Positions 3,001 to 41,077 of a stretch of DNA of 64,000 bases are shown here, one piece after another. The DNA is taken from positions 53,072,001 through 53,136,000 of the forward strand of contig OZ038378.1 of NCBI GenBank assembly GCA_964036045.1, written 5' to 3'. A program made the translations under genes and the position numbers. This DNA is from Eutreptiella sp. 'Long Island Sound 2002'. Taxonomy: Eukaryota > Protista > Euglenida. Each line of letters opens with the position of its first letter. Position 1 is the stretch's first letter. The notes below the pieces were generated by a model, which searched no databases, was not told the DNA's origin, and was given only the letters and a program-made list of their open reading frames with translations.

Positions 3001-6000
3001 CCCCAATTCAAGGGGCCACACAACAAGGCGTGGATTGTGGATCCCTAGACCCAATTCAAAGGGGCATGCAAAAAAGTGTGGATTGGGGTCCCTAACCCCA
3101 ATTCAAGGGGCCACACAACAAAGCGTGGATTGTGAGTCCCTAACCCCAACTCAAGGGGCCACGCAACAAAGCGTGGATTGTGAGTCCCTAACCCCAACTC
3201 AAGGGGCCACGCAACAAAGCGTGGATTGTGAGTCCCTAACCCCAACTCAAGGGGCCACGCAACAAAGCGTGGATTGTGAGTCCCTAACCCCAACTCAAGG
3301 GGCCACGCAACAAAGCCTGGATTGTGAATCCCTAACCCCAATTCAAGGGGCCACACAACAAAGCGTGGATTGTGAGTCTCTAACGCCAACTCAAGGGGCC
3401 ACGCAACAAAGCGTGGATTGTGAGTCCCTAACCCCAACTCAAAGGCCACGCGACAGGCGTGGATTGTGAGACCCTGACTCCAACTCAAGGGGCCACGCAA
3501 CAAAGCGTGGATTGTGAATCCGTAATTAAACTCAAGGGGTCACGCAACAAAGCATGGATTGTGAGTCTCTAACCCCAACTCCAGGGGCCACGCAACAAAG
3601 CGTGGATTGTGAATCCCTAACCCCAATTCAAGGGGCCACGCAACAAAGTGTGGATTGTGAGTACCTAACCCCAACTCAAGGGGCCACACAACAAAGCGTG
3701 GATTGAGAGTCCCGAACCCCAACTCAAGGGGCCACGCAACAAAGCGTGAATTGTGAGTCCATGAGCCCAACTCAAGGGGCCACGCAACAGAGCGTGGATT
3801 GAGAGTCCCTAACCCCAAATGAAGGGGCCACGCGACATGCGTGGATTGTGAGACCCTAACCCCGACTCAAAGAGGCCACGCAACAAAGCGTGGATTGTGA
3901 GTCCGTAATTAAACTCAAGGGGCCACGCAACAAAGCGTGGATTGAGAGTCCCTAACCCCAAATCAAGGGGCCACGCAACAGGCGTGGATTGTGAGACCCT
4001 GACCCCAACTCAAGGGGCCACGCAACAAAGCGTGGATTGTGAGTCCCCGAGCTCAACTCAAGGGGCCACGCAACAAAGCGTGGATTGTGAGTCCGTAACC
4101 CCAACTCAGGGGGCCACGCAACAAAGTGTGGCTTGTGACACCCTAGACCCAACTCAAGGGGCCAGGCAACAAAGCGTGGATTGTGAGTCCCTAACCCCAA
4201 CTCAAGGGGCCACACAACAAAGCGTGGATTGTGAGTCCCTAACCCCAACTCAAGGGGCCACGCAACAAAGCGTGGATTGTGAGTCCCTAACCCCAACTGA
4301 AGGGGCCACGCAACAAAGCACGGATTATGAGTCCCTAGACCCAACTCAAGGGGCCACGCAACAAAGCGTGGATTGTGAGTCCCTAACCCCAACTCAAGGG
4401 GCCACGCAACAAAGCGTGGATTGTGAGTCCCTAACCCCAACTCAAGGGGCCACGCAACAAAGCGTGGATTGAGAGTCCCTAACCCCAAATCAAGGGGCCA
4501 CGCAACAGGCGTGGATTGTGAGACCCTGACCCCAACTCAAGGGGCCACGCAACAAAGCGTGGATTGTGAGTCCCCGAGCTCAACTCAAGGGGCCACGCAA
4601 CAAAGCGTGGATTGTGAGTCCGTAACCCCAACTCAGGGGGCCACGCAACAAAGTGTGGCTTGTGACACCCTAGACCCAACTCAAGGGGCCAGGCAACAAA
4701 GCGTGGATTGTGAGTCCCTAACCCCAACTCAAGGGGCCACACAACAAAGCGTGGATTGTGAGTCCCTAACCCCAACTCAAGGGGCCACGCAACAAAGCGT
4801 GGATTGTGAGTCCCTAACCCCAACTGAAGGGGCCACGCAACAAAGCACGGATTATGAGTCCCTAGACCCAACTCAAGGGGCCACGCAACAAAGCGTGGAT
4901 TGTGAGTCCCTAACCCCAACTCAAGGGGCCGCGCAACAAAGCGTGGATTGTGAGTCTCTAACCCCAACTCAAGGGTCCACGCAACAAATTGTGGATTGTG
5001 AGTCTCTAACGCCAACTCAAGGGGCCACGCAACAAAGAGTGGATTGTGAGTCCCTAACCACAACTCAAGGGGCCACACAACAAAGCGCGGTTTGTGAGTC
5101 GCTAGACCCAACTCAAGGGGCCACGCAACAAAGCGTGGATTGTGAGTCCCTAACCCCAACTCACAGGGCCATGCAAAAAAGTGTGGATTGAGGTCCCTAA
5201 CCCCAATTCAAGGGGCCACACAACAAGGCGTGGATTGTGGATCCCTAGACCCAATTCAAAGGGGCATGCAAAAAAGTGTGGATTGGGGTCCCTAACCCCA
5301 ATTCAAGGGGCCACACAACAAAGCGTGGATTGTGAGTCCCTAACCCCAACTCAAGGGGCCACGCAACAAAGCGTGGATTGTGAGTCCCTAACCCCAACTC
5401 AAGGGGCCACGCAACAAAGCGTGGATTGTGAGTCCCTAACCCCAACTCAAGGGGCCACGCAACAAAGCGTGGATTGTGAGTCCCTAACCCCAACTCAAGG
5501 GGCCACGCAACAAAGCCTGGATTGTGAATCCCTAACCCCAATTCAAGGGGCCACACAACAAAGCGTGGATTGTGAGTCTCTAACGCCAACTCAAGGGGCC
5601 ACGCAACAAAGCGTGGATTGTGAGTCCCTAACCCCAACTCAAGGGCCACGCGACAGGCGTGGATTGTGAGACCCTGACTCCAACTCAAGGGGCCACGCAA
5701 CAAAGCGTGGATTGTGAATCCGTAATTAAACTCAAGGGGTCACGCAACAAAGCATGGATTGTGAGTCTCTAACCCCAACTCCAGGGGCCACGCAACAAAG
5801 CGTGGATTGTGAATCCCTAACCCCAATTCAAGGGGCCACGCAACAAAGTGTGGATTGTGAGTACCTAACCCCAACTCAAGGGGCCACACAACAAAGCGTG
5901 GATTGAGAGTCCCGAACCCCAACTCAAGGGGCCACGCAACAAAGTGTGGATTGTGAGTCCCTAACCCCAACTCAAGGGGCCACGCAACAAAGCGTGGATT

Positions 6001-6281
6001 GTGAGTCCCTAACCCCAACTCAAGGGGCCACGCAACAAGGCGTGGATTGAGAGTCCCTAACCCCAAATCAAGGGGCCACGCGACATGCGTGGATTGTGAG
6101 ACCCTAACCCCAACTCAAAGAGGCCACGCAACAAAGCGTGGATTGTGAGTCCGTAATTAAACTCAAGGGGCCACGCAACAAAGCGGATTGAGAGTCCCTA
6201 ACCCCAACTCAAGGGGCCACGCGACAGGCGTGGATTGTGAGACCCTAACCCCAACTCAAGGGGCCACGCAACAAAGCGTGG
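1..6281. repeat. 48-bp tandem satellite, ~130 units, runs off the left edge of the window
   Basis: Consensus GTGGATTGTGAGTCCCTAACCCCAACTCAAGGGGCCACGCAACAAAGC repeats continuously, with scattered 47-bp variants. It ends abruptly at ...AAAGCGTGG (6281). All ORFs called here are translations of the repeat. Confidence 0.98.
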
Positions 6282-12330: not shown

Positions 12331-15300
12331 AATAGAGGAGACAGTATTATTTGATGTATCGCTGGGCTTTGTGGTTGTAATTTGTGACGTCCCGGGCTAG
12401 TACGCGAAGATCAGCCTAAATACGGGTGTGACAAAGTCTTGGATGTAACTAATAGATGGGGGGAGGCCTCTGCATGGGGCTGGGGGGGGGGGGGGAGGGG
12501 GTAGAAAATGGGTTTCTATGTTAAGACCCAAGTACTACCTCGCACTACAAATTTGTTTCATTGAAATTTTGCTGTGTGGACCTCCAAAGTGCGCTGTACA
12601 ATTTCAGTTTTTGAGAAATCGTGGAAACCTCCAAGTGCTTGCTCTCACTAGAACTTTCTTTCATTTAAGTGCGTGGGGTCTACTTGGAGCATCAAACCTC
12701 GAAAGTGCGCCCGACTACCGGCCCTAGAAGAGGGGCCCACGGTTTCGGTTTTTAGCCAAGAAAGTTTTCGTGTAAACCTCCAAGCATTGCCTTGCACCAA
12801 ACCCATTTTTCATTGAAATTGGTGTTGTTTGTGTAGATCACTAGACGTCACAAAAAACACAGCCCCACTGTTTCATATTTTGGAAACTAGTTGTTGTACG
12901 TGAAGCCCCAAATACGAGCTCTGATCCAAAGTTTTTTCATTAAATGCATGATGTCTTCGTAAAGCACTGGACCTCCAAAGTGCGCCGCACCACCATTTCC
13001 GGTTTTTATCAGTATCATTTCTATGTAAGCCGCCAAGTATTACCAAGCACCATATCTTTTTTCCATTGGAACTGCTTTCGTCGACATAGCACATTGGACC
13101 TGCAAAGTATGCTCGACTATTGGCCCCAAGAATAGGGGCCCACTATTTCCGCACTAAATAGCGGTTCTTTGTGGAGCCCCAAGCAATAACTCGCACCACA
13201 CTGCTTTTTCATTGAAATTGGTGTTGTCTACTTGGAGCACTAAACCTCCAAAGTGTGCCCAACTATCTGCTCCAAAACAAGGGCCCATTGCTTTATGGTT
13301 TAACCAAAGGGGGTTCTATTCAAAGCCCCAAATACCAGCTCTCACCGTAATTTTTCCTCATTGAAATTGGTGTTGTCTACTTAGAGTGCTAGGCGTCCAA
13401 GTTGCGCTTGAGGTTCCACCCTTGAACAAGGCCTACCATTTCGCTTGTTAAACAATAGGGGGTCCCTGTGAAGCCCCTAGTTCTAGCTCACACCATAATC
13501 TTTTTTCATTGAAATTGGTGTTGGACCTCCAAAGTGCGCCCGACTACCCGCGCCAATAAATAGGCCCACTATTTAGATTTTAAACTAGTAGGGATGATAT
13601 TCCAAGCCCCAAGTACCCTGTCCTAATAACTCTTCTTAATGGAAATTTGTGTTTTCTAGTTAGAGCACTGGACCTCCAAACGGCACTCCACTATGCGCCC
13701 CCACAAAGGGGCCCATTATTTTCATTTTCAACAAGTAGGGGTTCCATGTCAAGCCCCAACTGCTAGCTCTCACCAGAACCTTTCATCATTGAAACTGGTG
13801 TTGTCCACCGCGAACACTAGGCCTCCAGGGTGGGCTCCACTATTAGCTCCAATACGGGTGCCCACTATGTTTGTTTTGAACAAGGAGGGGTTCTATGTAA
13901 AGCCCCATCCATTACATCGCACCACAACACTTTTTGATTGATATTGGTGTTGTCTACTTAGAGCACTAGACCTCCAAAGTGCACTCGATTGTTCCTCCAA
14001 AGCAGGGGCCCACTATTTCCATTTATCCAAATAGGGGTTCTTTGTAAACCTCCAAGTACCAACTCTCCCCAAAACTCTTTCGTCCTTGAAACTCATGTTG
14101 TTTACTAAGAGCACAAGACATCCACAGTGCGTTTGAACATCCGCATTAAAATACTGGCTGACTATTTCGCTTTTTAACAAATTGGGGTTCCATGTAAACC
14201 CCCAAGTACCAGCTCTCACCGTATTTTTTTCTCATTGAAAATAATTCGGTCTACTTAGAGCAGCAGACCTCCAAAGTCTGCTAGACTATGCGTCCTAGTA
14301 CAACCACCGGCTATTTTACTTTTTAACACCGTAAGCACGGGCTCTCACCAAAATTTTTTTACATTCAACTTCGTGTTGTTTACTTTAATCGCGCGACCTC
14401 CACAATGTGCTCTAGTATCTTCGCCAAAATCCGAGCCCAGTATTTTGTTGTCCAATAACTAGTGGTTCTGTGTAAAACCCCAAGTACTAATGGCTTTGGC
14501 TATGCAGAGCATTGGACCTCCAAAGTGCGCCTAACTATTGGCACCAAAGGACGGGCCCAAAGTTTCAATTTTTAGCAAGTAGAGTTTCTTTATTCCCCCA
14601 TGAATTCGCTTTCAGAATAACCTCTTGCTAATCAAATCGGTGTTGTCTACGTAGAGCACTAGACCTCCAAAAGGCGCTCAACTACCTACCGTAGAACACG
14701 GCCCACTATTTCAGTCTTTAGCCAAAAGAGGTTCTATCTAAAACCCCAACTGGTAGCTCTCACCACAATCTTGTTTCATGGAAAGCTCTTTGGTTTATAT
14801 AGAGGAGTGGACCTCAAAAGCTGAGTATGCGCCCCAAAGAAGAGGCCCACTCTTTCAATTTTTAACACGTAGGGGTTCTACGTACATCTCCAAGCACGTG
14901 GTTTCACCATGACAATTTGTCATTGAAATTCATGTTATCAGCGTAGAGCACTAGAGCTCCAAAGGGCGCTAGACTAGCCGCCCTAGAACCGGCGCCTACC
15001 AAAAAGGGGGCCCATTGTTTCCTAGTTTAACAAGTCGGGGTTCAATCCAAAACTCCAACTACTACCTCCGCCCACGGCTTTTGTTCATTGGTGGTGTCTA
15101 CTTAGAGCACTAGGCATCCACACTGCGCTCAACTGTCCGCTTCACAACACGGGCCCAATGATTCCGTTTTCAACAAGTAGGGGTGCTACGTAAGACCCCA
15201 AGAAGTAGATGTCACCGCAACCGTTTTTTATTTAAATCGTGTTGTCTTTTTGGAACAAAAAATGTCCAAAGCACGGTCAACCATCCGCCCAAAAATAGGG

Positions 15301-17508
15301 GCGCACTCTTTCATGAGGACTCCAAGAGGGGTTCTTTGTAAAGTCCTAAATAATTACTCTCGTTACAACATTTTTTTCGCTAGACCACCAATAGGAGCTC
15401 AACTATCTGCCCCAGAATAGTGGTCCACTGTTTTGGTTTTTATTTGGTGGGATTCTATGTGAAGCTGCAAGTGCTAGCTCTCACCACAACCCCTTGTCAT
15501 TGAAATTGGTCGTGTCTACTTAGAGCACTCGACCCCCAACGGGCGCTAATCCATCCGCACAAAATTAGGACCCACTTATTTCGTGTCTTCAAAAGCAGGG
15601 GTTCTATGTAACTCCCCAAGTTCTGGCTCTCACCATAAGCTTTGTTCATTGAAATTGATGTTGCCTACTTGGAGCACTAGACCTCCAAAATTTGGTCCAC
15701 TATGCGCCCGTGAAAAGGGGCCCAGTATTTTTGGTTTTGTTAAGAAGCAATTGTTTGTAAAACCCTAATTCAATTACTAGCTGTCACCATAACTATTTTT
15801 CCTTGAAATTGGTGTGGTCTACTTAAGGCACTAGAGCTCCAAAGTGCACTTGACTATCCGTGCCGAAACGGCCGCCCATTGTTTCTCTCTATGTTAAGCC
15901 CCAAGTAGCAACTCTGACCATAAGCTTATTTCATTGAAATTGGTGTTGTATAGTTAGAGCAGTGGACCTAAAGAGTGCCGTTAACCATCCGCCGTTAAAG
16001 AGGGGCCCACTATTTCGCTTTTCAACAAAGATAATTTCTATGTAAAGCCCCAAGTACCGGCTCACCCGAATCTTTTTTGATTGAAATTGGTATTGTCTAC
16101 TTAGAGCACCTGACCGCCAAAGTGCGCTTGACTATCCGCCCCTACACAAGGGCCCATTGTTTTATGTTTTCGGCGGTAGGGCGTGTATGCAAAGTCCCAA
16201 ACACCAACTCTCGCCATTGCCATGTTTTCATTGAAATTGGTGTTGTCTACTTAGAGCCACAGACCTCCAAACTGCGCCCCCTTGTCCGCCGTAACGAAAA
16301 TACCAAGCCGCAGCTACCCTCTCATCAAAATTTTTTGCAATCGAATTCACTGTCGTCTAGTTGGAGCACTGGACCTCAAAAAGGGACTCCACTATGCGCC
16401 CCACAAAACGCACGCACTTTTTTCATTGTTCAGAAGTAGGTCTTCTATGTAAAGCCCATAGTGCGAGCTGTCACCGTAACCTTTTTTCATTGAAAGTGGT
16501 GTTGTCTATGTAAAGCACTAGACCTCCAAAGTGCACTCCACTATCGGCCGCAAAACACGGGCTCATTGTTCCAAGCTTTTTAAACAATAGGGGTTCTATG
16601 TGAAGCCCCAAATACCAGCTCTCACAATAATTTTTCTCATTTAAATTGGTTTGGTCTACGTGAAGCACTAGACCTCCTAAGTGTGCGCGGGCATCCGCCG
16701 CAGATTGGTGCCCCACAATTACCGTTTTATTAAGTAGAAGGTCCATGTAAAGCCCCAAGTATTACATTGCCCCAGAACTCTTTTTGATTGAAATCGACAT
16801 TGTATTTTTAGAGCATGCTACCTCCACAATGCGCTTGACTACCCACCCCACATTACAGCATTAGGGGCCCACTATTTCTTTTTTTCACAAACAGTCCTTC
16901 TATGTAAATCCCCGAATACGAGCTCTCACCGTAACCTTTTGTCATTGAAACTTGTGCGGTGAACTTAGAGTCGTAGACGTCCAAAGTGCGCTTCAGTATC
17001 CGCCCTAGAAAGCGCCCCAAAACCTAGCTTTCCCCGGATCTTTTTTTCATTGTAGTTCGTGTCGCCTGCCTGGATCCTTGGACCTCCACAGTGTGCTATG
17101 TTGTTTGATGTCTTCAAAAGTGGGGGTCTATGTAGAACCCCAGGTACCAGCTCTCACCATAACTCTTTTTCATTGAAAGTGGTATTGCCTACTTACGACA
17201 TTCCACCTCCAAGAGGCGCACCACTATGTGCCCCGGAGAAGCGGCCCACTATTTTCGCTTTCATTGAGTAGGGGTTCTATGCAAAACCCCAATTATTGGC
17301 TTTCCGCACATCATTTTTTCATTGAAATTGGTGTGGTCTACTGAAGCATAAACCTCCACAATGCGCTTGTCTGCGCTTGTCTACCCCAATACACGGACAC
17401 CGTGTTTCTCTCTATGTAAAGCCCGATGTAGCAACTCTCACTAGAAGCTTTTTTCATTGAAATTGTGGTCGTCTAGTTAAATTGGTGGACCCGAAAGTGC
17501 GCTCCACC

Positions 17509-18607
17509 CAGGGGGGGGGGGGGGGGGGCAACAGCAAATGTTTCCAACATGGGGGTGTTAACCAAATTTTTCAGCCCCCTCGAAAAAAAGGGTAGTTTGG
17601 GGGGTTTTTGCACATTTCAAACCTGCCCGCCGAAAAAAGGGACAGTTTTTGTATTGAACAAAAACCAAGGCAAAGTAGCACCGTGTGACCCTCACTGGAA
17701 TTTATAATTTTTAGATTGATGCTTGGCACTGGTCCCAGGGCCACAAAGTCTGCACCCTGCAGCCCCTGCTGTCATACCAGAAATTTTCAATTTTTAGTTT
17801 GATGCTTACCACAGGTCTGAGAGTCCCAATTTCTGCTCCCTGCAGCCCCTACTCTCGTACCAGGGATTTTTCATTTTTAGTCTGATGTGTGGGTGTTGCT
17901 CACAAAGTTCTCTTGTGGCGTCATCCACGGCTAATCCGGGCACGTGCCTGGACAAGCTAGGGTGTTCCCGCCATGCAACAGGGCTTGAGTCATGCAACAA
18001 AGTACTTCGGGGACGGATTTTTTTTGCAGCAGGTCGGCCTCACGGTTCACACAAGCCTTGTTGGCAAATGAGCCCTTTGCAAAGGATATCACCGAGTTGG
18101 ATGCTCAACACCTCGGAAGAATGTTGTTGTGTCATGACAAAAACCGAGGACATGTTGTGAAGAGACGAAGACAATGGACATAGGCAAAGACAGAAATTGG
18201 GACCCTGGGACCTGTGGCAAACATCAGACTAAAAATCAAAAATTGATGGCGTGACAGCGCGGGCCGCGGGGTGCAAAATTTGGGACCCTGGGACCTTTGG
18301 CAAGCATAAGACTAAAAATTAAAAATACCCGGGATGACAGCAGGGGCTGCAGGGTGCAGAAATTGGGACTCTGAGACCTCTGGCAAGCATCAGACTAAAA
18401 ATTAAAAATTGCTGTGTGACAGCAGGGGCTGCGGGGTGCACCAATTGGGACCCGGGGACCGGTGGCAAGCAGAGAGAAATCAACAAAACTCAAATGTGTG
18501 AAACGGGTGTTAACCAAATTTTTCAGCCCCTTCGAAAAAGCGGGGTAGTTCGGCCAAACTATACCCTCTGTCGAGAATTAGCATGTCGCCCCCCCCCCCC
18601 CCCCCCG
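17509..18607. mobile_element. Non-autonomous TIR DNA transposon (hAT-like termini), copy 1
   Basis: Starts CA-G18 and ends GCATGTCG-C18-G. GCTCCACC is duplicated at 17501-17508 and 18608-18615. Removing the element and one duplicate restores a normal monomer (AAAGTGCGCTCCACCATCTGCCCC). Contains inverted arrays of 83-bp subterminal repeats. Confidence 0.85.
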
Positions 18608-19643
18608 GCTCCACCATCTGCCCCTGAAAACGGCCCCACTGTTTTTGTTTTTATGAAGTAGTGCTTGTATATAAAACCACAAGTATTCCCTCGCAACAGG
18701 CCGATTTGTGATTGAAATTTGTGTGACTAGACCCCCAAAGTGCGCTTCACCGAAATAGGGGCCCACTATTTCCATTTTTCACAAATAGGGGTTCTACGAG
18801 AACCTCCAAATACTAGCTCTCACCATATCGTTTTGCCGTTGAAATTCGGGCGCACTACTTAAAGTCTTACACTTTCAAAATGTGCTTGACTATCGGCTTG
18901 AGAACACATGCCCACTATTTTACGTTTTAACAGGTAGGGCCCGCTTGTACGGTTGCAAAACCCAAACAACACCCGAATTTTTTTCACTCACACTTATGTT
19001 TTCTACTTAGATACTTGGTCCTCCAAAGTGTGTTGTCGTATCCGCGGGAAAATAGGGGCCCGGTTGTTTCATGTCTTTAAAACTGCGGTATCAATATAAA
19101 GCCTCAAGCACCACATGCCTTTTTTCATTGCAATTGGCGTTGCCTACTTAGAGCATCGGACCTCGCCATATGTGTGCCCTCGAAAAGGGGCCCACTGTGT
19201 TTGTTTAATTGAGTAGGGATTTCGATGCGTAACCCAAGAACTAGCTCTCACCATAACTATTTTTCATCGAAATTGGTAGTGCTTCAAAGTGCGCTACACT
19301 ATGCGCTCCAAAACACAGGCCCAGTGTTGCTCTCCACGTAAAGCCCCAAGTAGCCACTCTCACCATAATTTTTTTCATTCAAGTTGGTGTTGTCTGCTTA
19401 GATGAATGGCCCTCAAAAGTGCGCTCGGCCAATAGCCCCTGAACAAGGGCCCACTTTTTCCGTTTTCAACAAGTAGGGGTTCTATGTAATTTGCCAATTA
19501 CCGGCTCACACGCGACCCGCTTTTCGTTCAATTTGGTGTGCGCTCAATCTTGGGTCCCACAACAAGGCCATGATTTCCATGTTTAACAACAAGGGCTTGT
19601 ATGTAAAGTCCCAAGTATTCGATGGCCATAACATTTTTTTGTC

Positions 19644-21490
19644 CCCGGAAAAGAGGGGCGACTCTGCGGGTCGTAGGACGCCAACTCCCCCCCCCCTAGG
19701 GGCCTTCGGTCAACAGTTAGTTGCCAAAGGTGTTGCCCTCAAGCATCCATGGGCGCCTAAGCCCTCCATGCTCCATGAACACCAAAGGTGCCTTAAGGAA
19801 AATTTTGTCCAATTTGCACACGAGCACTATCCTTAAAACCAACCTTGAATCACGCCCAACCCCAACCCTCAGCCTACTCCTACCCGAACACCTAATCAAG
19901 ACTGAATATTGGGACCGAGCTGGTGGGGGAGGGAACATCAGCTATGACTGGTGAGGAACATCAAGAATGATTCACACATTGATGGCTCTTGACAAAGTGA
20001 AATCAGCTTGCACGTGAACCCCATCACCACGAGGCACACTTTCAAGGCTTTTTGGACTTCACAGGGGCCAAAATGCCCCAAAACGGGCTCAAAATGGGCC
20101 CATTTCACCCGTTTGTGCACCCCAAATGGTCGAGGATGAGGTTTGGAAAAATGTGTTTTTGACCCACTTTTGACCCATTTTTGGTCCCAAAACAGCCCAT
20201 TTTCAAGCCATTTTGGGATTTTTGGAGGACCAAAATGGGCCACCACAAGCTCAAAACGGTCCAAAAACACTTGTTTTAGCGTCGCACATGGTCTAGGATC
20301 ATTTTTGAGAAAAGTCATCTTTTTGCCCCTACTGGACCCTGTTGACCCATTTGGGCACCCACCTGTTTGGGCTTGAGCTTGCAGCTTGCCGCAGCCTAGT
20401 GGGCCTAGGTATTGGGGTCTAAGCGTCCATTTGGGCCATTCTAAGGGGTGGAAACCACAAAAAGTGGGGGGTTGCGGGTGCAGTAGGTGCCCTAGGAATC
20501 ACATTTTGAGCCATGTAGCCAAAGATATGGCCTATTCTTGGTTTTTTGATGTCGCCATTTGGCGCTTTTGGGGGCCTTTTTAGGCCGTTTCCGGGACATA
20601 TCATGGAGTTAGAGGGCCGCAAAGAGCTCGTTGACACGGGGAAGTCACGCCGCACATGGAGTGTACCCACTGTTTCCCTTCGTTTGGCCGTTTTGAATGT
20701 GTTCCAAGGCTTTTTTGGCCCAAAAATGGCTGTTTTTGGCCCTAAACTGCATTTTTTAAAACTGAGGTCCGCCACTTGCGAATCCCGTTCCCGGCCGCCA
20801 CCGTGGAGTTTCTTGCTCAAACTTTGTGTGATGGTACTTCACATCCATAGGTATCATCCACCAAAATTTCACCCGAATCCGAAGCACCGGGACGGAGTTC
20901 TCGTTTTTCCCCATTTCGCGCGCGCGGCTTGCTTGCTTGCTGCTTGCTGCTTGCTTACTTGCTGCCTGCTGCTTGCTGCTAAACCTGGTAGGTCCACCCT
21001 AGACACTAAAAAGGGTTATAAAACCAAGACTGGTTCCACCAGCTCGGTGACCCTCACCGTAACCCTAGCCCTAACCCTAGCCCTAGCTCTCACCCTAGGC
21101 TAGGGTCCGAGTGAGTGTTGGGGTCCAAAATGGAGAGCAATCATGTGGCAAAAGCAGCCATAAACAAAAATTGGGGGAGCTTGTTCAGTTCAATTAACAT
21201 GGCTGGCATGGCCAAACCAGGTTGCTGCAAAGGTTAGGGTTAGGTTTATGGTGGTGGTATGTTTAGAGGGAGGGCAAGGGCAGGTAAGGTTAGCTTGTGC
21301 CTCCTCTCCCACCTGGAACCCCACCACAACCACCACCCCGAATTGCCCCACTTGCCCCCCCCGCGCCCCCCCCCCAGCCGACTCTCCCCCCCATTCGCCC
21401 CTCCTTGAACCCCCCCCCCCCCTCCCCCGAAGGGCCTGCGGCCAACAATTAGTCCGAGGGGTAATTGTGCCCCCTCCCCCCCCCCAGTGA
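19644..21490. mobile_element. Composite insertion in the satellite, copy 1
   Basis: Non-satellite block flanked by TTTTGTC on both sides (19637-19643, 21491-21497), at the junction between HOR monomer types M13 and M1. Contains telomere-like tracts, C-rich ends and a nested TIR element. Confidence 0.75.
19914..21048. mobile_element. Nested TIR element (13-bp perfect inverted termini), copy 1
   Basis: ACCGAGCTGGTGG (19914-19926) and CCACCAGCTCGGT (21036-21048). The interior has TTTTGACCCA-type short repeats and a GCTT/GCT microsatellite (~20928-20980). No clear target duplication. Confidence 0.7.
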
Positions 21491-24400
21491 TTTTGTCATT
21501 GAAATTTAGTGTTGACGACTTGGGGCAGTAGACCTTCAAAGTGCCCTATTTCCCCTTCCAAAAACAATGCCCCATGGTTTTTTGCTTTAAAAGTAGTGGT
21601 TGCATGCAAAGCCCCAAATACCAGCTCTCACTGTGACCTCTTCTCGTCGCACTTCGTGTTGTCCACTTAGAGCACAGGACCTCTAAAGTGCACTTGACCA
21701 TCCACCCCAGAACAAGGCCAACTATTTTGGTTTTTAAACAATAGGGGTTCTATGTAAAGCCCCAAGTACTCGCTCTCACCAAAACTCTTTTTCATTGATA
21801 TTGGTGTTGTCTAGTTAGAGCGACGGACCTCTGAAGTGCGCTCCAACAGGGGCCAAACAAAAGAGTCCACTATTTTGACCTTTGACTAGGAGAGGTGGTT
21901 TGTCAAGCCCCAAGTACCCTGTCACTATCACTCTTTTTAATGGAAATTCGTGTTGTCTAGTTAGACCACCGAACCTCCGAAAGGCACTCCAGTATGCGCC
22001 CCAGAGAACGACCCCACAAATTTCATTTTTAGCATGCAGGGGTTCTATGCAAGGCTCCAAGAAAACGGGCCCACTAGACCTCCAAAATGCGCTCCGCTGT
22101 CGGCCCCAAGATGGGGCCCATTGTTTCATGCTTTTGAGAAGTAGGGGTTCTGTCTAAAGCCCCAAGAAACAGCTCTCAACGATGCCTTGTTTCATAGAAA
22201 TTGGAGTTGTCTCCTCAGTCTACTAGGCCTCCAAAGTGCGCTAGACCCAAAAAGGGGGCCCACTATTTCCGTTTTTTGACATGTAGGGGTTCTATGTAAA
22301 GCCCCAAGTACTACCTCGCAGCACAACACTTTTTGATCAAAACTCGTGTTGTGAATGTAGAGCATGGGACCTCCAAGGTGCGCTCGACTACCCGCCCCAA
22401 AGCAGGGGCCCGGTTTTTTAATTCTGAACAAATAGTGGTTCCATGTAAATACCCAAGTGCCAAGTCTCACCGTAACTCTTTGTCATTGGAATTCATGCAG
22501 TGAAGTTAGAGTTTTAGACTTCCAAAGTGCGCTTGACTATCCGCTCTAGAACAAGACCCCAATATTACACTTATTAACAACTAGGGCTTCCATGTAAAGC
22601 CCCAAAACCTACTTGTCAACTCAACTTGTCGTGTTGTCCGCCACGATCACAAGACACCCAGAGTGTGCTTTACCATCAACGCCAAAATAGGGGCCCACTT
22701 GTTTCATGTCTCCAAAAGTGGGGGTGCAATGTAGAGCCCCAAGTACCAGCTCTCGCCATAAACTTTTTTTCACAGAAGTGGGTGTTGGCTACTTAGAAAA
22801 GTGGACCACCCAAATGCGCTCCACTATGCGCCCGTGAAAAGAGGCCCATTGTTTTTGCTTTTATTCAATCGGGGTGCTATGCAAAACCCCAATTCATAAT
22901 TCTCAACACCTCCTTTTCATTGAACTTAGTGTGCTCTAGTGAGAGCACCGGAGCTTCGAATAGCGCTTCAAATTGCGCTCCACTATGAGCCTCAATACCG
23001 ACACGCACTGCTTATTTTTTTTACATGTAGGGGTTCTACGTACAGCTCCAAGTACGACTTTTCACCGTGACTATCTGTCATTGAAATTCATGTTATCAGC
23101 TTAGAGCACTAGAGCTCCAAAGGGCGCTAGACTAGCCGCCCTAGAACCGGCGCCTACCAAAAAGGGGGCCCATTGTTTCCTAGTTTAACAAGTCGGGGTT
23201 CAATCCAAAACTCCAACTACTACCTCCGCCCACGGCTTTTGTTCATTGGTGGTGTCTACTTAGAGCACTAGGCATCCACACTGCGCTCAACTGTCCGCTT
23301 CACAACACGGGCCCAATGATTCCGTTTTCAACAAGTAGGGGTGCTATGTAAGACCCCAAGAAGTAGATGTCACCGCAACCGTTTTTCATTTAAATCGTGT
23401 TGTCTTTTTGGAACAAAAGATGTCCAAAGCACGGTCAACCATCCGCCCAAAAATAGGGGCCCACTCTTTCATGAGGGATGCAAGAGGGGTTCTTTGTAAA
23501 GCCCTATATAATAACTCTCTCCATAGCTATTATTTTCGCTCGACCACCAACAAAAGCTCAACTACCCAGCCAAAAGACACTCAACTATCCACCCCAAAAC
23601 AATGGTCCACTGTTTCGGTTTTCATTTGGTGGGTGTCCTATGTAAAGCCCCAAGTGCTAGTTCTCACCGCAACCCTTTGTGATTGAACTTGGTGTTGTCT
23701 ACTTGGAGAACGCCTCCAAAGTGCGCTAAACCATCTGTCCTAAATAGGGGCCCACTTATTTGGTGCTTTTAGCACTGGGGGTTCTATGTAACTTCCCAAG
23801 TACTAACTTTCACCATAATCTTTATTCATTTGAAATTGACGTTGCCTTTTTGGAGCACTGTACCCCCTAATTGTGCTCCACGGTGCGCCTCGGAAATGGG
23901 CTGACTATTTTTGTCTTTATGAAGGAGGCGTTCTTTAAAAAAAAACCAAGTACTAAACTCCAACGATACCTATTTTGCGTTGAAATTGGTATGGTCTACT
24001 TACAGCACTAGAGCTCCAAACTGCCCTCCCCTACCCCGAAACGCCCGCCAATTGTTTCTCTCTATGTTAAGCCCCAAGTAGCAACCCTTTTTGGATTGAA
24101 TTTGGTGTTGTGTAGTTACAGCAGTGGACCCCAAGAGTGCCGTTAACCATCCACCCTTAAGAAGGGTCCCAGTATTTGGGTTTCAACAAAGAGGAATTCT
24201 ATGTAAAGCCCCAAGTACTGGCTCTCAGCGGCACTTTTTTTGAATGAAATTGGTATTGTCTACTTAGAGCACCTAACCGCCAAAGTGCGCTTGACTATCC
24301 GCCTCTGCACAAGGGCCCATTGTTTTATGTTTTCAGCGGTAGGGCTTGTATGCAAAATCCCAAACACCAGCTCTCGCCAGTGCCATGTTTTCATTGAAAT

Positions 24401-25896
24401 TGGTGTTTTCTACTTAGAGGCACAGACCTCCAAACTGCACCCCCTCGTCCGCCATAACGAAAATATCAAGCCGCAGCTACCCTCCCATCACACATTTTTG
24501 TCATCAAATTCACTGTCGTCTAGTTGGAGCACTGGACCTCAAAAAGGTACTCCACTATGCGCCCCACAAAACGCACGCACTTTTTTCATTGTTCAGAAGT
24601 AAGTCTTCTATGTAAAGCCCATAGTGCTAGCTGTCACCGTAACCTTTTTTCATTGAAAGTGGTGTTGTCTATGTAAAGCACTAGACCTCCAAAGTGCGCT
24701 CCACTATCGGCCGCAAAACACGGGCTCATTGTTCCAAGTTTTTTAAACAATAGGGGTTCTATGTAAAGCCCCAAATACCAGCTCTCACAAGAAATTTTCT
24801 CAATTAAATTGGTTTGGTCTACGTGAAGCACTAGACCTCCTAAGTGTGCGCGGGCATCCGCCGCAGATTGGTGCCCCACAATTGCCGTTTTCACCAAGTA
24901 GGAGTTCTATGTATAGCCCCTAGTATTACCTCGCACCGGGATCTATTTTGATTGAAATCGGTGTTGTCCACTTAATTGGACCTCCATAGTGCGCTTGACT
25001 ACCCGCCCCGAAATACGGGCACACTTTTCCCATTTTCACAAATAGGGGTTCTAGCTCGCCACGGTATCATTTTGTCATTGAAATTCATGCGGTGAATTCA
25101 CAGTCTTAGACGTTCAAAGTACGCTTCACTATCCCCCTTTGAAAACAGGCCCACTATTTTACTTTTTAACACGTAGAGCCTCCTTGTACACTCCCAAACC
25201 CCAGCTGTCAATCGAATTTTTTTGCATTGAAATTTGTTTTGGCTACTTACATCACTAGGCGTCGGAAGCGTGTTGTAGTACCCGCGGGAACATAGGGACC
25301 CACCTGCTTCATATTTTCACAAGTGGGGTATCTATGTAAAGCCTCAAGCACCACAACCCTTTTTTCATTGCAATTGGTGACGTGTACTTAGAGTAGTGGA
25401 CCTCCAAAATGCGCTCCACTATGCGCCCCGGAAAAGGGGCCCACTATTTTCGTTTTTATAAAGTAGGCGCTTGATCTAAAACCCCAAGAACTAGGTCTCA
25501 CCAGAACTATTTTTCATTGAAATTGGTGTGGTCTACTTAGAGCATTCTAGCTTCGAAGTGCCCTCCACTATCCGCCCAAAAACACGGGCCTATTGTTTCT
25601 CTCTAAGTAAAGCCCCAAGTAGCAACTGTCACCATAATTTTTTTCATTGAAATGGGTGTTGTCTAAATGGATCAGTGCACCTCAAAAGTGCGCTCGACCA
25701 TCCGCCCCAGATCAGGAGCCCACTCTTTCCGTTTTTAACAAGTAGGGGCTCTACGTAAAGTACTCATCGGAACCTTTTTTCATTGAAAACAATGTGTGCC
25801 CACCTATGGCCGCAGAAACAAGGCCCACTATTTCCATGTTTAACAAGTAAGGGTTCTATGTAAAGTTCCTTGTACTAGCTCAGCATAACATTTTGT

Positions 25897-28800
25897 CATT
25901 GAAATTTGATGTTGTCTATTTAGCGCACTAGACTTCCAAAGTGCGCTCTATTCCCGCCCCAAAAAAAGGCCCCATGGTTTCCTGCTTTAAAAGTAGTGCT
26001 TGTACGCAAAGCCCCAAATACGAGCTCTCACTAGGACCTTTTCTCCTTGCAATTCGTGTTGTCGATTTAGAGCACTTGGGCTCCAACGTGCACTTGACCA
26101 TCCACCCCAGAACAAGGCCAACTATTTCCGTTTTTAAACAATAGGGGTTCTATGTAAAGCCCCAAGTACTAGCTCTCACCAAAACTGTTTTTCATTGATA
26201 TTGGTGTTGTCTAGTTAGAGCAACGGACCTCTAAAGTGCGCTCCAACAAGGGCCAAACAAAAAGGCCCACTATTTTGACTTTTGACTAGGAGAGGTGGTA
26301 TGTCAAGCCCCAAGTACCCTGTCACCATCAATCTTTTTAATGGAAATTCGTGTTGTCTAGTTAGAGCATTAAACCTCCAAAAGGCAATCCAGTATGCGCC
26401 CCAGAGAACGACCCCACAAATTTCAGTTTTAGCATGTAGGGCTTCTATGCAAAGCCCCGGGAACAGCTCTCACCAAAACCTTTTTTCATTGAAATTGGTG
26501 TTGCCTACTTCAAGCACTAGACATCCAAAGTACACTCCACTCTCGGCTCCAAAATGGGGCCGCATCGTTTGATGCGTTTGATAAGTAGGGGCGTGGTGTA
26601 CAGCCCTAAGTACCAAGTCTCACCAGAGCCTTGTTTTATTGGAATTGGTGTTCTGTACTCGGAGTACTAGACCTCCAAGGTGCGCTCGGGCCTAGACGGG
26701 GGGTCCACTATTTCCATTTCTTCGCAAGATGGGGTTCCATGTAAAGCCCCAAGTACTACCTGCCACCACAACGCTTTTTGATTGATTGGTGTTGTCCACT
26801 AAGTGCTTTGGACCTCCAAAGTGTGCTCCACTATCCGCCCCAAAGCAACGGCCCACTTTTTCCCTGCTAACAAATGGTGGTTCTATGCACACACCGGAGT
26901 ACCAGCTCTCACCGTAACTCTTTGTCATTGAAATTTATGCAGTCAACTTAGAGTCTTAGGCGTCCAAAGTGTGCTTGACTATCGACCCTAGATACTTATT
27001 AATAAGTAGGGCTTCCATGTAAAGCCCCAAAACCTAGCTATGAGCCAAATTGTTTTTCATTGTGTTGTCCACCTAGATCATTGGATCTCCAAAGTGTGCT
27101 CTACTATTCGCGTCAAAAAAGGGGCCCACTTGTTTGATGTCTTCAAAAGTGGGGGTTCTATGTAGAGCCCCAACCAGCTCTCACTGTAACCTTTTTTCAT
27201 TGCAATTGGTGTTCCTTACTTACATAATCGAACCTCTAAAATGTGCTCCAATGTGTGCCTCGGGAAAGAAGCCCGGTATTTGGTTTTTATTAGGTAGGGG
27301 TTCTATCTTAAACCCCAATCACTAGCTCGCAGCACAACTCCCTTTCATTGAAATTGGTGTGGTATAGTGAGAGCACTAGAGCTTCAAAGTGCCCTCCACT
27401 ATCCGCCCCAAAACACGGGCCCATTGTGTGTGTGTGTTTCTCTCTAAGTAAAGCCCCAATGAGCAACTGTCGCCAAGTTTTTTTCATTGAAATTGGTGTT
27501 GTCTAAATGGATCAGTGCACCTCAAAAATGCGCTCGACGATCCGCCCGTGATCAGGGGCCCATTCCTTCCGTTTTCAACAAATAGGGGTTCTATGTGAAG
27601 TGCCAAGTACTAGCTCTCGCCGGAAATTCTTTTCAATGACATTGGTGTGCACTCCACAATGGGCCCTAGAACAAGGCCCACTGTTTCCATGTTTAACAAG
27701 CAAGGGTTCTATGTAAAGCCCTAGGTACTAGTTAACCATAACATTTTGTCATTGAAAATCGGTGTTGTCTATTTAGTGCACTAGGCCTTCAAAGTGCGCT
27801 CTATTCCCGCCCCAAAAAAAGGCCCCATGGTTTCCTGCTTTAAAAGTAGTGCTTGTATGCAAAGCCCCAAATACCAGCTCTCAGTAGGACCTTTTCTCCT
27901 TGCAATTCGTGTTGTCGATTTAGAGCACTTGGGCTCCAACGTGCACTTGACCATCCACCCCAGAACAAGGCCAACTATTTCCGTTTTTAAACAATAGGGG
28001 TTCTATGTAAAGCCCCAAGTACTAGCTCTCACCAAAACTGTTTTTCATTGATATTGGTGTTGTCTAGTTAGAGCAACGGACCTCTAAAGTGCGCTCCAAC
28101 AGGGGCCAAACAAAAAGGCCCACTATTTTGACTTTTGACTAGGAGAGGTGGTATGTCAAGCCCCAAGTACCCTGTCACCATCAATCTTTTTAATGGAAAT
28201 TCCTGGTGTTTAGTTAGACCATTAAACCTCCAAAAGGCAATCCAGTATGCGCCCTAGAACACGACCCCACAAATTTCATTTTTAGCATGCAGGGCTTCTA
28301 TGCAAAGCCCCGGGAACAGCTCTCACCAAAACCTTTTTTCATTGAAATTGGTGTTGCCTACTTCAAGCACTAGACATCCAAAGTACACTCCACTCTCGGC
28401 TCCAAAATGGGGCCGCATCGTTTGATGCGTTTGATAAGTAGGGGCGTGGTGTACAGCCCCAAGTACCAAGTCTCACCAGAGCCTTGTTTTATTGGAATTG
28501 GTGTTCTGTACTCGGAGTACTAGACCTCCAAGGTGCGCTCGGGCCTAGACGGGGGGTCCACTATTTCCATTTCTTCGCAAGATGGGGTTCCATGTAAAGC
28601 CCCAAGTACTACCTGCCACCACAACGCTTTTTGATTGATTGGTGTTGTCCACTAAGTGCTTTGGACCTCCAAAGTGTGCTCCACTATCCGCCCCAAAGCA
28701 ACGGCCCACTTTTTCCCTGCTAACAAATGGTGGTTCTATGCACACACCCGAGTACCAGCTCTCACCGTAACTCTTTGTCATTGAAATTTATGCAGTCAAC

Positions 28801-31800
28801 TTAGAGTCTTAGGCGTCCAAAGTGTGCTTGACTATCGACCCTAGATACTTATTAATAAGTAGGGCTTCCATGTAAAGCCCCAAAACCTAGCTATGAGCCA
28901 AATTGTTTTTCATTGTGTTGTCCACCTAGATCATTGGATCTCCAAAGTGTGCTCTACTATTCGCGTCAAAAAAGGGGCCCACTTGTTTGATGTCTTCAAA
29001 AGTGGGGGTTCTATGTAGAGCCCCAACCAGCTCTCACTGTAACCTTTTTTCATTGCAATTGGTGTTCCTTACTTACATAATCGAACCTCTAAAATGTGCT
29101 CCAATGTGTGCCTCGGGAAAGAAGCCCGGTATTTGGTTTTTATTAGGTAGGGGTTCTATCTTAAACCCCAATCACTAGCTCGCAGCACAACTCCCTTTCA
29201 TTGAAATTGGTGTGGTATAGTGAGAGCACTAGAGCTTCAAAGTGCCCTCCACTATCCGCCCCAAAACACGGGCCCATTGTGTGTGTGTGTTTCTCTCTAA
29301 GTAAAGCCCCAATGAGCAACTGTCGCCAAGTTTTTTTCATTGAAATTGGTGTTGTCTAAATGGATCAGTGCACCTCAAAAATGCGCTCGACGATCCGCCC
29401 GTGATCAGGGGCCCATTCCTTCCGTTTTCAACAAATAGGGGTTCTATGTGAAGTGCCAAGTACTAGCTCTCGCCGGAAATTCTTTTCAATGACATTGGTG
29501 TGCACTCCACAATGGGCCCTAGAACAAGGCCCACTGTTTCCATGTTTAACAAGCAAGGGTTCTATGTAAAGCCCTAGGTACTAGTTAACCATAACATTTT
29601 GTCATTGAAAATCGGTGTTGTCTATTTAGTGCACTAGGCCTTCAAAGTGCGCTCTATTCCCGCCCCAAAAAAAGGCCCCATGGTTTCCTGCTTTAAAAGT
29701 AGTGCTTGTATGCAAAGCCCCAAATACCAGCTCTCAGTAGGACCTTTTCTCCTTGCAATTCGTGTTGTCGATTTAGAGCACTTGGGCTCCAACGTGCACT
29801 TGACCATCCACCCCAGAAAAAGGCCAACTATTTCCGTTTTTAAACAATAGGGGTTCTATGTAAAGCCCCAAGTACTAGCTCTCACCAAAACTGTTTTTCA
29901 TTGATATTGGTGTTGTCTAGTTAGAGCAACGGACCTCTAAAGTGCGCTCCAACAGGGGCCAAACAAAAAGGCCCACTATTTTGACTTTTGACTAGGAGAG
30001 GTGGTATGTCAAGCCCCAAGTACCCTGTCACCATCAATCTTTTTAATGGAAATTCCTGGTGTTTAGTTAGACCATTAAACCTCCAAAAGGCAATCCAGTA
30101 TGCGCCCTAGAACACGACCCCACAAATTTCATTTTTAGCATGCAGGGCTTCTATGCAAAGCCCCGGGAACAGCTCTCACCAAAACCTTTTTTCATTGAAA
30201 TTGGTGTTGCCTACTTCAAGCACTAGACATCCAAAGTACACTCCACTCTCGGCTCCAAAATGGGGCCGCATCGTTTGATGCGTTTGATAAGTAGGGGCGT
30301 GGTGTACAGCCCCAAGTACCAAGTCTCACCAGAGCCTTGTTTTATTGGAATTGGTGTTCTCTACTCGGAGCACTAGACCTCCAAGGTGCGCTCGGGCCTA
30401 GACGGGGGGTCCACTATTTCCATTTCTTCGCAAGATGGGGTTCCATGTAAAGCCCCAAGTACTACCTGCCACCACAACACTTTTTGATTGATTGGTGTTG
30501 TCCACTAAGGGCTTTGGACGTCCAAAGTGTGCTCCACTATCCGCCCCAAAGCAACGGCCCACTTTTTCCATCCTAACAAATGGTGGTTCTATGCACACAC
30601 CCGAGTACCAGCTCTCACCGTAACTCTTTGTCATCGAAATTTATGCAGTCAACTTAGAGTCTTAGGCGTCCAAAGTGTGCTTGACTATCGACCCTAGATA
30701 CTTATTAATAAGTAGGGCTTCCATGTAAAGCCCCAAAACCTAGCTATGAGCCAAATTGTTTTTCATTGTGTTGTCCACCTAGATCATTGGATCTCCAAAG
30801 TGTGCTCTACTATTCGCGTCAAAAAAGGGGCCCACTTGTTTGATGTCTTCAAAAGTGGGGGTTCTATGTAGAGCCCCAACCAGCTCTCATTGTAACCTTT
30901 TTTCATTGCAATTGGTGTTCCTTACTTACATAATCGAACCTCTAAAATGTGCTCCAATGTGTGCCTCGGGAAAGAAGCCCGGTATTTGGTTTTTATTAGG
31001 TAGGGGTTCTATCATAAACCCCAATCACTAGCTCGCAGCACAACTCCCTTTCATTGAAATTGGTGTGGTATAGTGAGAGCACTAGAGCTTCAAAGTGCCC
31101 TCCACTATCCGCCCCAAAACACGGGCCCATTGTGTGTGTGTGTTCCTCTCTAAGTAGAGCCCCAAGTAGCAACTGTCGCCAAGTTTTTTTCATTGAAATT
31201 GGTGTTGTCTAAATGGATCAGTGCACCTCAAAAATGCGCTCGACGATCCGCCCGTGATCAGGGGCCCATTCCTTCCGTTTTCAACAAATAGGGGTTCTAT
31301 GTGAAGTGCCAAGTACCAGCTCTCGCCGGCAATTCTTTTCAATGACATTGGTGTGCACTCCACAATGGGCCCTAGAACAAGGCCCACTGTTTCCATGTTT
31401 AACAAGCAAGGGTTCTATGTAAAGCCCTGGGTACTAATTAACCATAACATTTTGTCATTGAAAATCGGTGTTGTCTATTTAGTGCACTAGGCCTTCAAAG
31501 TGCGCTCTATTCCCGCCCCAAAAAAAGGCCCCATGGTTTCCTGCTTTAAAAGTAGTATGCAAAGCCCCAAATACCAGCTCTCACTAGGACCTTTTCTCCT
31601 TGCAATTCGTGTTGTCGATTTAGAGCACTTGGGCTCCAACGTGCACTTGACCATCCACCCCAGAAAAAGGCCAACTATTTCCGTTTTTAAACAATAGGGG
31701 TTCTATGTAAAGCCCCAAGTACTAGCTCTCACCAAAACTGTTTTTCATTGATATTGGTGTTGTCTAGTTAGAGCAACGGACCTCTAAAGTGCGCTCCAAC

Positions 31801-40800: not shown

Positions 40801-41077
40801 GTATGCAAAGCCCCAAATACCAGCTCTCACTAGGACCTTTTCTCCTTGCAATTCGTGTTGTCGATTTAGAGCACTTGGGCTCCAACGTGCACTTGACCAT
40901 CCACCCCAGAACAAGGCCAACTATTTCCGTTTTTAAACAATAGGGGTTCTATGTAAAGCCCCAAGTACTAGCTCTCACCAAAACTGTTTTTCATTGATAT
41001 TGGTGTTGTCTAGTTAGAGCGACGGACCTCTAAAGTGCGCTCCAACAGGGGCCAAACAAAAAGCCGACTATTTTGAC
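25897..41077. repeat. Homogeneous 13-monomer higher-order repeat array: 8 full copies plus a 3-monomer partial
   Basis: The M1 anchor CATTGAAA occurs at 25897, 27750, 29603, 31456, 33303, 35149, 37002, 38849 and 40695 (periods 1853, 1853, 1853, 1847, 1846, 1853, 1847, 1846). Thirteen monomer anchors counted between 27750 and 29603 (spacings 116-150 bp). Confidence 0.96.

Follow-up and report, generated by a model that had tools for sequence, protein, structure and literature searches.

The element at 17509-18607 of the window (the whole 64,000-nt stretch of DNA analysed here) is very probably a decayed DNA transposon of the cut-and-paste type, ~1.1 kb long, non-coding and non-autonomous; it most likely belongs to the hAT superfamily and is not an intron in its present location. 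We regard it as an ordinary transposon copy that lends modest support to the hypothesis of a transposon origin for the nonconventional introns of euglenids.

Anatomy and insertion site of the element

Inspection of the sequence delimited an element of 1,099 bp with inverted ends, each composed of C[A/G]G, a G-run and CGACATGC, and with a perfect 8-bp duplication, GCTCCACC, on both sides. The features are as follows.

17501-17508, + strand: target-site duplication, left copy, GCTCCACC (read from the sequence; the one-copy empty site aligns gaplessly to satellite paralogues)
17509-17536, + strand: left terminal inverted repeat (TIR), consisting of CAG, 17 more G and a degenerate CGACATGC box
17553-17600, + strand: left subterminal motif, with a direct-orientation repeat near the right end (93% identity)
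17693-17891, + strand: left arm, ~2.4 tandem 83-bp subrepeats
17892-18190, + strand: central unique region, whose sole ORF is a spurious one of 91 aa
18191-18471, + strand: right arm, ~3.4 units of the 83-bp tandem subrepeat, in the orientation opposite to the left arm
18505-18553, + strand: right subterminal motif, the direct repeat of 17553-17600
18581-18607, + strand: right TIR, consisting of GCATGTCG, a C-run and a final CCG
18608-18615, + strand: target-site duplication, right copy, GCTCCACC (read from the sequence; empty-site alignment)
14929-26000, + strand: segmental duplication unit A, which carries the element (partner 46229-57255, 97.1% identity)
46229-57255, + strand: segmental duplication unit B, ~11 kb (partner 14929-26000)
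48791-49899, + strand: second copy of this insertion, target-site duplications included, produced by the segmental duplication (98.3-98.5% identity with 17501-18615)

Self-comparison aligned the left arm with the right arm in inverted orientation over 199 nt (78%), and the CGACATGC box of the left TIR is intact in the duplicate, at 48799-48823. Since none of the 16 window ORFs had a Pfam match, the window holds neither coding capacity nor an autonomous partner for the element, and a window-wide Rfam search at gathering thresholds gave no match.

The element interrupts a 148-bp satellite that spans 12505-64000. When the element and one copy of GCTCCACC were removed, the remaining sequence aligned without gaps to paralogous 148-bp monomers (best 25359-25488, 80%); the summed alignment score was 516 with one 8-mer kept, and worse with two or zero copies (427 and 388). 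The 8-bp duplication is thus genuine and not a chance repeat. Satellite periodicity aside, this element was the sole hit when the whole window was scanned for exact 8-bp repeats next to a terminal inverted repeat of at least 11/14. The other satellite interruptions, at 19640-21488, 41046-41955 and 59288-60224, lack both a TIR and an 8-bp duplication and were rejected as family members. ORF and Pfam searches gave no coding signal in the window and no gene near the element, in keeping with a caveat of the earlier note that its setting is satellite and not a gene.

The same layout is present at 48791-49899, as that note had reported, but the two copies had been treated there as separate evidence. 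Both lie inside one segmental duplication (97.1%) and their flanks are identical; the window therefore contains a single insertion, and the observation that the right end reads CCG in both copies amounts to one data point.

Family copies in a second assembly

Family copies were located via spurious ORFs, for example with the 91-aa ORF of the central region as a handle; one subfamily ends in CAAATCTCGAA. Six further independent complete copies were recovered from ENA assembly ERZ25074135, all on long contigs. Their duplications are ACCGACCC/ACCAACCC, GTGTGCGC, GTCTATAT, CCCCATGC/CCTCATGC, GGCCACAT and GACGAATG. Together with the window copy, an 8-bp target duplication is present in 7/7 independent complete copies, five of them matching at 8/8 positions and two at 7/8, which bears out the proposal of a DNA transposon with TIRs and 8-bp target duplications. 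Three truncated copies (L064, L065 and L066) and one with a damaged left end (L067, whose probable duplication, CATTTGAC/CATGTGAC, matches at 7/8) were excluded from the count.

The ends of the family comprise C[A/G]G, 9-19 consecutive G and CGACATGC, for a total length of ~20-29 bp; 9/14 ends read CAG and 5/14 CGG, and the combinations found among the copies are CAG-CTG, CGG-CTG, CGG-CCG and CAG-CCG. Pairwise identity within the main family was 92.6-95.3%, with the window copy no outlier, and at ~5-7% divergence between copies the family looks old. Among the complete copies, seven in all, and several fragments, none was recognizably gene-borne, nor did the empty sites reconstructed for the seven contain a convincing ORF.

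Several further searches were negative: the 91-aa ORF of either window copy had no exact match on record, a homologue search with a subrepeat-derived peptide gave no candidates, and an 18-mer from the subterminal motif matched 58 loci in a metagenome scan, all of them chance matches without extended similarity. The E. gracilis spliced leader, used as a lead only, had no match in the window or in 73 kb of ERZ25074135 loci.

This anatomy suggests that a transposase encoded elsewhere would recognize the inverted ends (C[A/G]G, 9-19 G and CGACATGC) together with the subterminal repeats, the inverted arrays of 83-bp units. Such an enzyme would cut the element out and integrate it again at a break with an 8-bp stagger, whose repair would generate the 8-bp duplication. 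The window copy derives from one insertion into a 148-bp satellite monomer, later copied passively by the 11-kb segmental duplication.

Assignment to the hAT superfamily

The terminal pattern of hAT elements is YARNG, and the CAGGG ends of the element fit it, so that the hAT-type ends described in the earlier note are indeed present. The target consensus of hAT elements is nTnnnnAn in the Ac group and nnnTAnnn in the Buster group. Among the seven duplications, too few for a firm comparison, T occupies position 2 in 2/7, A position 7 in 2/7, A position 5 in 5/7 and T position 4 in 2/7; the nTnnnnAn consensus was not seen across them. We know of no described hAT element with long homopolymer G/C ends. 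As the window ORFs yielded no transposase that could serve as a partner, the assignment draws on two features only, duplication length and end motif. In the literature, the TIRs of hAT elements are short (10-25 bp), their target duplications measure 8 bp, and BuT2 likewise starts with CAG (PMC3942097).

With non-autonomous hAT elements and hAT MITEs (Ds of maize, BuT2 of Drosophila) the family shares the 8-bp duplication, short inverted ends starting with CAG, the non-coding state, subterminal repeat arrays and copies that are dispersed over unrelated loci and carry separate duplications. It differs from them in the 9-19 nt G-run directly after CAG, in the polymorphism (A or G) at end position 2 and in arms made of 83-bp tandem units in inverted orientation; at 1.1 kb, the element also exceeds the typical size of a MITE.

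Membership of another superfamily with 8-bp duplications (Merlin, P or a short-duplication Mutator-like group) is unlikely. Merlin elements have TIRs with terminal 5'-GG and duplications of 8-9 bp, and two E. gracilis Merlin families were reported with 8-bp duplications (PMC8101967), so that duplication length fits, and the long G-run resembles the terminal GG. However, a terminal 5'-GG next to the duplication is found in none of the copies: in 7/7 the duplication adjoins C[A/G]G and not the G-run, and when the element is read from GG no flanking repeat is left in the sequence. The fit of CAGGG to the hAT pattern speaks against Merlin, P and Mutator-like elements alike. All seven duplications are exactly 8 bp and none is 9-10 bp, which refutes the longer Mutator-like duplication that the earlier note had named as one outcome that would overturn its reading. 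It is scarcely conceivable that the structure is no mobile element at all, whether a palindrome within the satellite or an assembly artefact at homopolymer runs. The window is strongly enriched in G/C homopolymers of at least 11 (62 matches, 0.11 expected), and run lengths are unequal in the two window copies. We nevertheless rejected this reading: in a second assembly, independent copies occupy unrelated loci and every one is flanked by an 8-bp duplication of its own, which refutes it, and the satellite paralogues provide a clean empty site.

Fit to the nonconventional-intron code

The published splicing code of nonconventional introns is N3-CDG...CH'G-N5-6|R, in which D and H' are able to pair, and natural CGG-CCG and CGG-CTG introns have been shown to splice (PNAS 2025; PMC12501133). 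The 3-nt and 5-nt spacers of this code sum to 8, the length of the duplication, and the earlier note's arithmetic on its 3-nt and 5-nt offsets thereby agrees with the literature (PMC12501133). The hypothetical intron that it drew at 17506-18612 has the sequence it described, with A after C at the start, CAG at +4..+6, CCG at -8..-6 and C before A at the end.

On the + strand, which the earlier note had considered, CAG...CCG contains an A·C mismatch that breaks the pairing rule. On the - strand, the window copy reads AGC-CGG...CTG-GGTGG, which fits the code through a G·U pair; the 3' exon would start with A, and the first downstream base is A on both strands. To judge from sequence, transcription from the - strand is the sole case in which this copy would satisfy all of the code. 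Across the seven copies, 5/7 conform to the full code on the - strand and 1/7 on the + strand, with a downstream purine in 6/7 and 2/7, respectively. In predicted minimum-free-energy folds of the 1,109-1,115-nt RNA, the ends are paired over at least 20 bp on both strands; the motifs are predicted to form C-G, an unpaired A and G-C on the + strand, and C-G, G-U and G-C on the - strand.

Given CDG...CHG ends and an 8-bp duplication, any such element in a transcript satisfies the spacing of the code, and its removal from 3 nt before CDG to 5 nt after CHG would restore the target. The fit is thus generic to any hAT element with CDG...CHG ends and not a property of this locus, and the label 'introner-like' given to the element is therefore unearned here. 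The Y|R bias predicted at duplication positions 5|6 was not borne out either, occurring in only 1/7 copies on the + strand and 2/7 on the - strand. Two supports of the original argument, copy independence and this bias, are thereby removed.

Introners, as found in Micromonas, dinoflagellates and others, are removed by the spliceosome, have GT/AG signals partly co-opted from a 3-5 bp duplication, and are defined by many near-identical copies inside genes. The family resembles them as a non-autonomous DNA transposon whose TIR and duplication could supply splice signals, but none of its seven copies is in a recognizable gene and the copies are 5-7% divergent.

Relation to the origin of nonconventional introns

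The idea that nonconventional introns derive from MITEs goes back to 2013, and the published hypothesis names no superfamily; such introns reportedly account for ~72% of those in E. agilis. We consider it improbable that the family itself generates introns, with exonic copies removed by nonconventional splicing from 3 nt before CDG to 5 nt after CHG. Under such a reading the family, like hAT-type MITEs, would be a live intron source and the window copy a non-genic sibling. The spacing arithmetic (3 + 5 = 8) agrees with the code, the four end combinations cover the three motif classes for which splicing of natural introns has been reported, 5/7 copies satisfy the full code on the - strand, and the MITE-origin hypothesis is already in the literature. 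E. agilis supplies two parallels: a recently gained gapC intron, reported in 2016, in which an 8-nt junction repeat, GTCCC|AAC, is split 5|3 with inverted repeats adjoining, and hsp90 intron 9, which starts with CAGGGG and ends with CCCCTG behind 3-nt and 5-nt spacers (PMC4770533). Against this stand the 0/7 copies demonstrably in a gene and the empty sites without a convincing ORF, the + strand that satisfies the code in 1/7 copies only, the missing Y|R bias at positions 5|6, and the ~5-7% divergence of a family that looks old. Moreover, the fit extends to any CAG...CTG element with an 8-bp duplication and does not single this family out. A comparison by eye of hsp90 intron-7 junctions in old orthologous introns revealed no excess of 5|3-register repeats, a result too weak to carry weight.

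A broader proposal would trace most nonconventional introns of Euglena to hAT-type non-autonomous elements that have CDG...CHG ends, with this family as one donor; it is possible, although we hold it only tentatively. If so, the 3-nt and 5-nt spacers of the code would be two parts of the 8-bp hAT duplication, the A/G polymorphism at end position 2 would give rise to the CAG/CGG-CTG/CCG classes of natural introns, and the excision machinery would be one that evolved to recognize the ends of transposons in RNA. Tying the 3 + 5 rule to the 8-bp hAT duplication makes the MITE hypothesis specific and checkable with existing genomes and RNA-seq. The window locus alone adds little to it; the gain lies in a family with a consistent 8-bp duplication, in end variants that mirror motif classes known to splice, and in an orientation-dependent prediction, the - strand of the window copy fitting the code and the + strand not.

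The transposon copy in the window shares with euglenid nonconventional introns, on its - strand, the pairing CDG/CHG motifs, and further a predicted extended helix beside them, a downstream purine and the 3-nt/5-nt spacers, here supplied by the 8-bp duplication; its - strand CGG...CTG class is one that has been shown to splice (PMC12501133). In contrast to those introns, it lies in satellite DNA and not in a gene, its + strand has the A·C motif mismatch, and its perfect 8-bp repeat allows nine equivalent junction registers. A parallel in layout is gapC intron 4 of E. agilis ACOI 323, in which both junctions are spanned by an 8-nt direct repeat in a 5|3 split and inverted repeats begin directly inside it, the same arrangement as a duplication plus TIR (PMC4770533). 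That intron differs in its length of 160-162 nt, in its CAT...ATG ends without a G-run and in its position within a coding exon, and it is removed from the mRNA; the authors of that study explained the repeat by repair of a double-strand break (PMC4770533).

Structure of the element and its insertion site

The element at 17509–18607 (17501–18615 with its flanking duplications) is a non-autonomous transposon with terminal inverted repeats (TIRs) and a total length of 1,099 bp. Its left end begins with CAG and 17 more G, and its right end reads GCATGTCG followed by a C-run ending in CCG at 18607.

Target duplications flanking the window element, as read from the sequence
17501–17508, + strand, left target duplication GCTCCACC
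18608–18615, + strand, right target duplication GCTCCACC

The TIR forms the outermost ~26–29 bp. The interior comprises a 48-bp subterminal motif that lies near one end and is repeated in direct orientation near the other, two mutually inverted arms of 83-bp tandem subrepeats (199 nt, 78% complementary) and, between the arms, a core of ~300 bp of unique sequence. Pfam searches gave no match for the window ORFs.

The 8-bp duplication is real. From 12505 to 64000 the sequence is a 148-bp satellite of uniform orientation, interrupted at only a few places, among them the element. With the element and one 8-mer copy deleted, the flanks aligned without gaps over the junction to paralogous satellite monomers, and the best-matching paralog (25359–25488) reads GCGCTCCAC at the same place. 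The summed alignment score was 516 with one 8-mer kept, compared with 427 with both and 388 with neither. When the whole window was scanned for TIRs of 11/14 or better directly adjoined by a perfect 8-bp repeat, the element was the only hit besides satellite-period artefacts.

The earlier note had treated 17501–18615 and 48791–49899 as separate copies, but both lie inside one segmental duplication of ~11 kb within the satellite (14929–26000 and 46229–57255, 97.1% identity). Their flanks are identical, and the differences between them fall mainly beside the left G-run. The window holds a single insertion event; because both copies lie within the segmental duplication, the CCG right end seen in each counts as one observation.

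Further copies of the family

Apart from the duplicated copy, no other family member was found within the 64-kb window, and a metagenome scan with an 18-mer gave chance matches alone. Relatives were found by way of spurious ORFs within the element: a 91-aa core ORF led to one protein match (P0001), and a 65-residue read-through of the left subterminal region led to others (P0003–P0007 and P0008–P0015). All relatives found sit on long contigs (0.2–2.2 Mb) of one ENA assembly, ERZ25074135, from which six additional complete, independent copies were recovered. Three truncated loci (L064–L066) and one with a damaged left end (L067) were left out of the copy count.

Complete family copies in ERZ25074135 (locus, ends, target duplication, remarks)
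L059, CAG...CTG, ACCGACCC / ACCAACCC
L060, CGG...CCG, GTGTGCGC, nested 1.5-kb insertion inside
L061, CAG...CTG, GTCTATAT, internal deletion
L062, CGG...CTG, CCCCATGC / CCTCATGC
L063, CAG...CCG, GGCCACAT, divergent subfamily (~72% identity), inner TIR box differs
L068, CAG...CTG, GACGAATG

With the window copy included, an 8-bp duplication is present in 7/7 copies. Main-family copies are 92.6–95.3% identical, the window copy is no outlier, and the family is moderately old.

Several loci have features of their own. The nested insertion in L060 (4132–5640) consists largely of tandem units of ~180 bp. At L065 (3980–7246), a family copy is cut off after ~290 bp by an opposite-strand LINE (Pfam RVT_1 and Exo_endo_phos products). 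The L062 target is a short tandem repeat, and ~30 nt of its left-flank sequence recur ~20 nt beyond the right end.

Assignment to a transposon superfamily

Elements of the hAT superfamily have the end pattern YARNG. Their hallmarks, namely an 8-bp duplication, short TIRs and a CAG start (PMC3942097), are shared by the window family, which on these sequence features probably belongs to hAT. Membership of another superfamily with 8-bp duplications is unlikely: Merlin elements of E. gracilis likewise generate them (PMC8101967), but Merlin TIRs end in GG, whereas in every family copy the duplication adjoins C[A/G]G. The Mutator-like alternative named in the earlier note (9–10-bp duplications, G-starting ends) was not observed, and the transposon with an 8-bp duplication that it proposed is borne out by all seven copies. 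The element is a hAT-like non-autonomous transposon, ordinary but for its unusual poly-G ends.

Fit to the nonconventional intron code

From the ends and the duplication, the earlier note had drawn a hypothetical euglenid nonconventional intron at 17506–18612; the end sequences and intron bases it listed are all present, likewise at 48791–49899. The published splicing rule is 5'-N3-CDG ... CH'G-N5-6 | R-3', in which D and H' are complementary; splicing is lost after single substitutions in CAG or CTG, the 5' spacer is intolerant of a 1-nt change, and natural introns with CGG-CCG and CGG-CTG splice (PMC12501133). The proposed arithmetic of 3 + 5 = 8 agrees with the published spacers N3 and N5 (PMC12501133), so any CDG...CHG element with an 8-bp duplication gets the correct spacing automatically, and its removal at the code positions restores the target. 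Every such element shares this geometric fit, which tells nothing special about the window locus. A perfect 8-bp repeat also gives nine equivalent junction registers, a 'slidable' class of junction that was excluded when the rule was derived (PMC12501133).

The fit depends on the strand in which the element would be transcribed. The + strand reading of the window copy proposed earlier, CAG...CCG, contains an A·C mismatch that the code disallows; on the − strand the copy reads AGC-CGG ... CTG-GGTGG | A, with all code elements present. The full code is found in 1/7 copies on + and 5/7 on −. At positions 5|6 of the duplication, the Y|R that the earlier note predicted is about as frequent as by chance (1/7 on +, 2/7 on −). 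Position 6 is a purine in 2/7 copies on + and 6/7 on −, which is not significant for a sample of seven copies in which several positions were compared. All four end combinations (CAG-CTG, CGG-CTG, CGG-CCG and CAG-CCG) occur among the seven copies, so one A/G polymorphism at end position 2 suffices for the natural-intron motif classes. To our knowledge the parallel has not been noted before; it is a correlation only.

Genic context and published introns

The window copy sits in satellite DNA, and a recognisable gene surrounds 0/7 family copies. The reconstructed empty sites contain no convincing ORF, and the called neighbours of the copies have no Pfam matches on record except the LINE beside L065. 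Rfam gave no match in the window, and an E. gracilis spliced-leader sequence was absent from the window and from 73 kb of ERZ25074135 loci. What stands of the earlier interpretation is the hAT-like non-autonomous transposon with its 8-bp duplication; the intron link is a plausible hypothesis, sharpened and testable, that the window locus does not demonstrate.

A MITE origin of nonconventional introns was first suggested in 2013/14 (PMC3935182) and restated in 2016, 2018, 2024 and 2025. In the literature searched, 'nonconventional intron' was nowhere combined with hAT, and Euglena hAT MITEs were nowhere described. One E. agilis strain recently acquired gapC intron 4, whose two junctions carry an 8-nt direct repeat (GTCCC|aac ... 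gtccc|AAC in Table S3); cattaccttg...caaggtatg lies directly inside the repeats (PMC4770533). The arrangement is that of a TIR directly inside a duplication, in 5|3 register; the authors read the repeats as double-strand-break repair (PMC4770533). An hsp90 intron in the same table starts aag-CAGGGG and finishes CCCCTG-agacc (PMC4770533). The best support to date for the general idea comes from these two published introns, not from the window locus.

Other repeats in the window

A 48-bp satellite (~131 copies, 87% match) fills 1–6281 and gives rise to long artefactual ORFs on both strands. The 148-bp satellite comprises 316 monomers, all in + orientation, with a higher-order repeat of ~1,850 bp at ~26000–41000. 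The 11-kb segmental duplication brings two different insertions along. A 1.85-kb non-satellite insertion at 19640–21488 (duplicate 50924–52752) contains several poly-C runs, a telomere-like CCCTAA-type stretch near 21040–21100, a GCTT/GCTG microsatellite near 20930–20980 and similar 20-nt motifs in direct orientation near both ends; neither a TIR nor an 8-bp duplication was found there. Two copies of a ~0.9-kb satellite insert (41046–41955 and 59288–60224), each finishing in a (CAG)n run, may be fragments of a retroposon or belong to a higher-order unit.

G/C homopolymers of at least 11 nt are hugely over-represented in the window, with 62 matches against 0.11 expected (for example at 9339, 9566, 9802, 9858, 12482 and 21410), and the L059 locus has 25 G/C runs of at least 10 in 12.3 kb. 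In both, they often occur as neighbouring C-run/G-run pairs and at insertion edges, and run lengths vary between duplicated copies.
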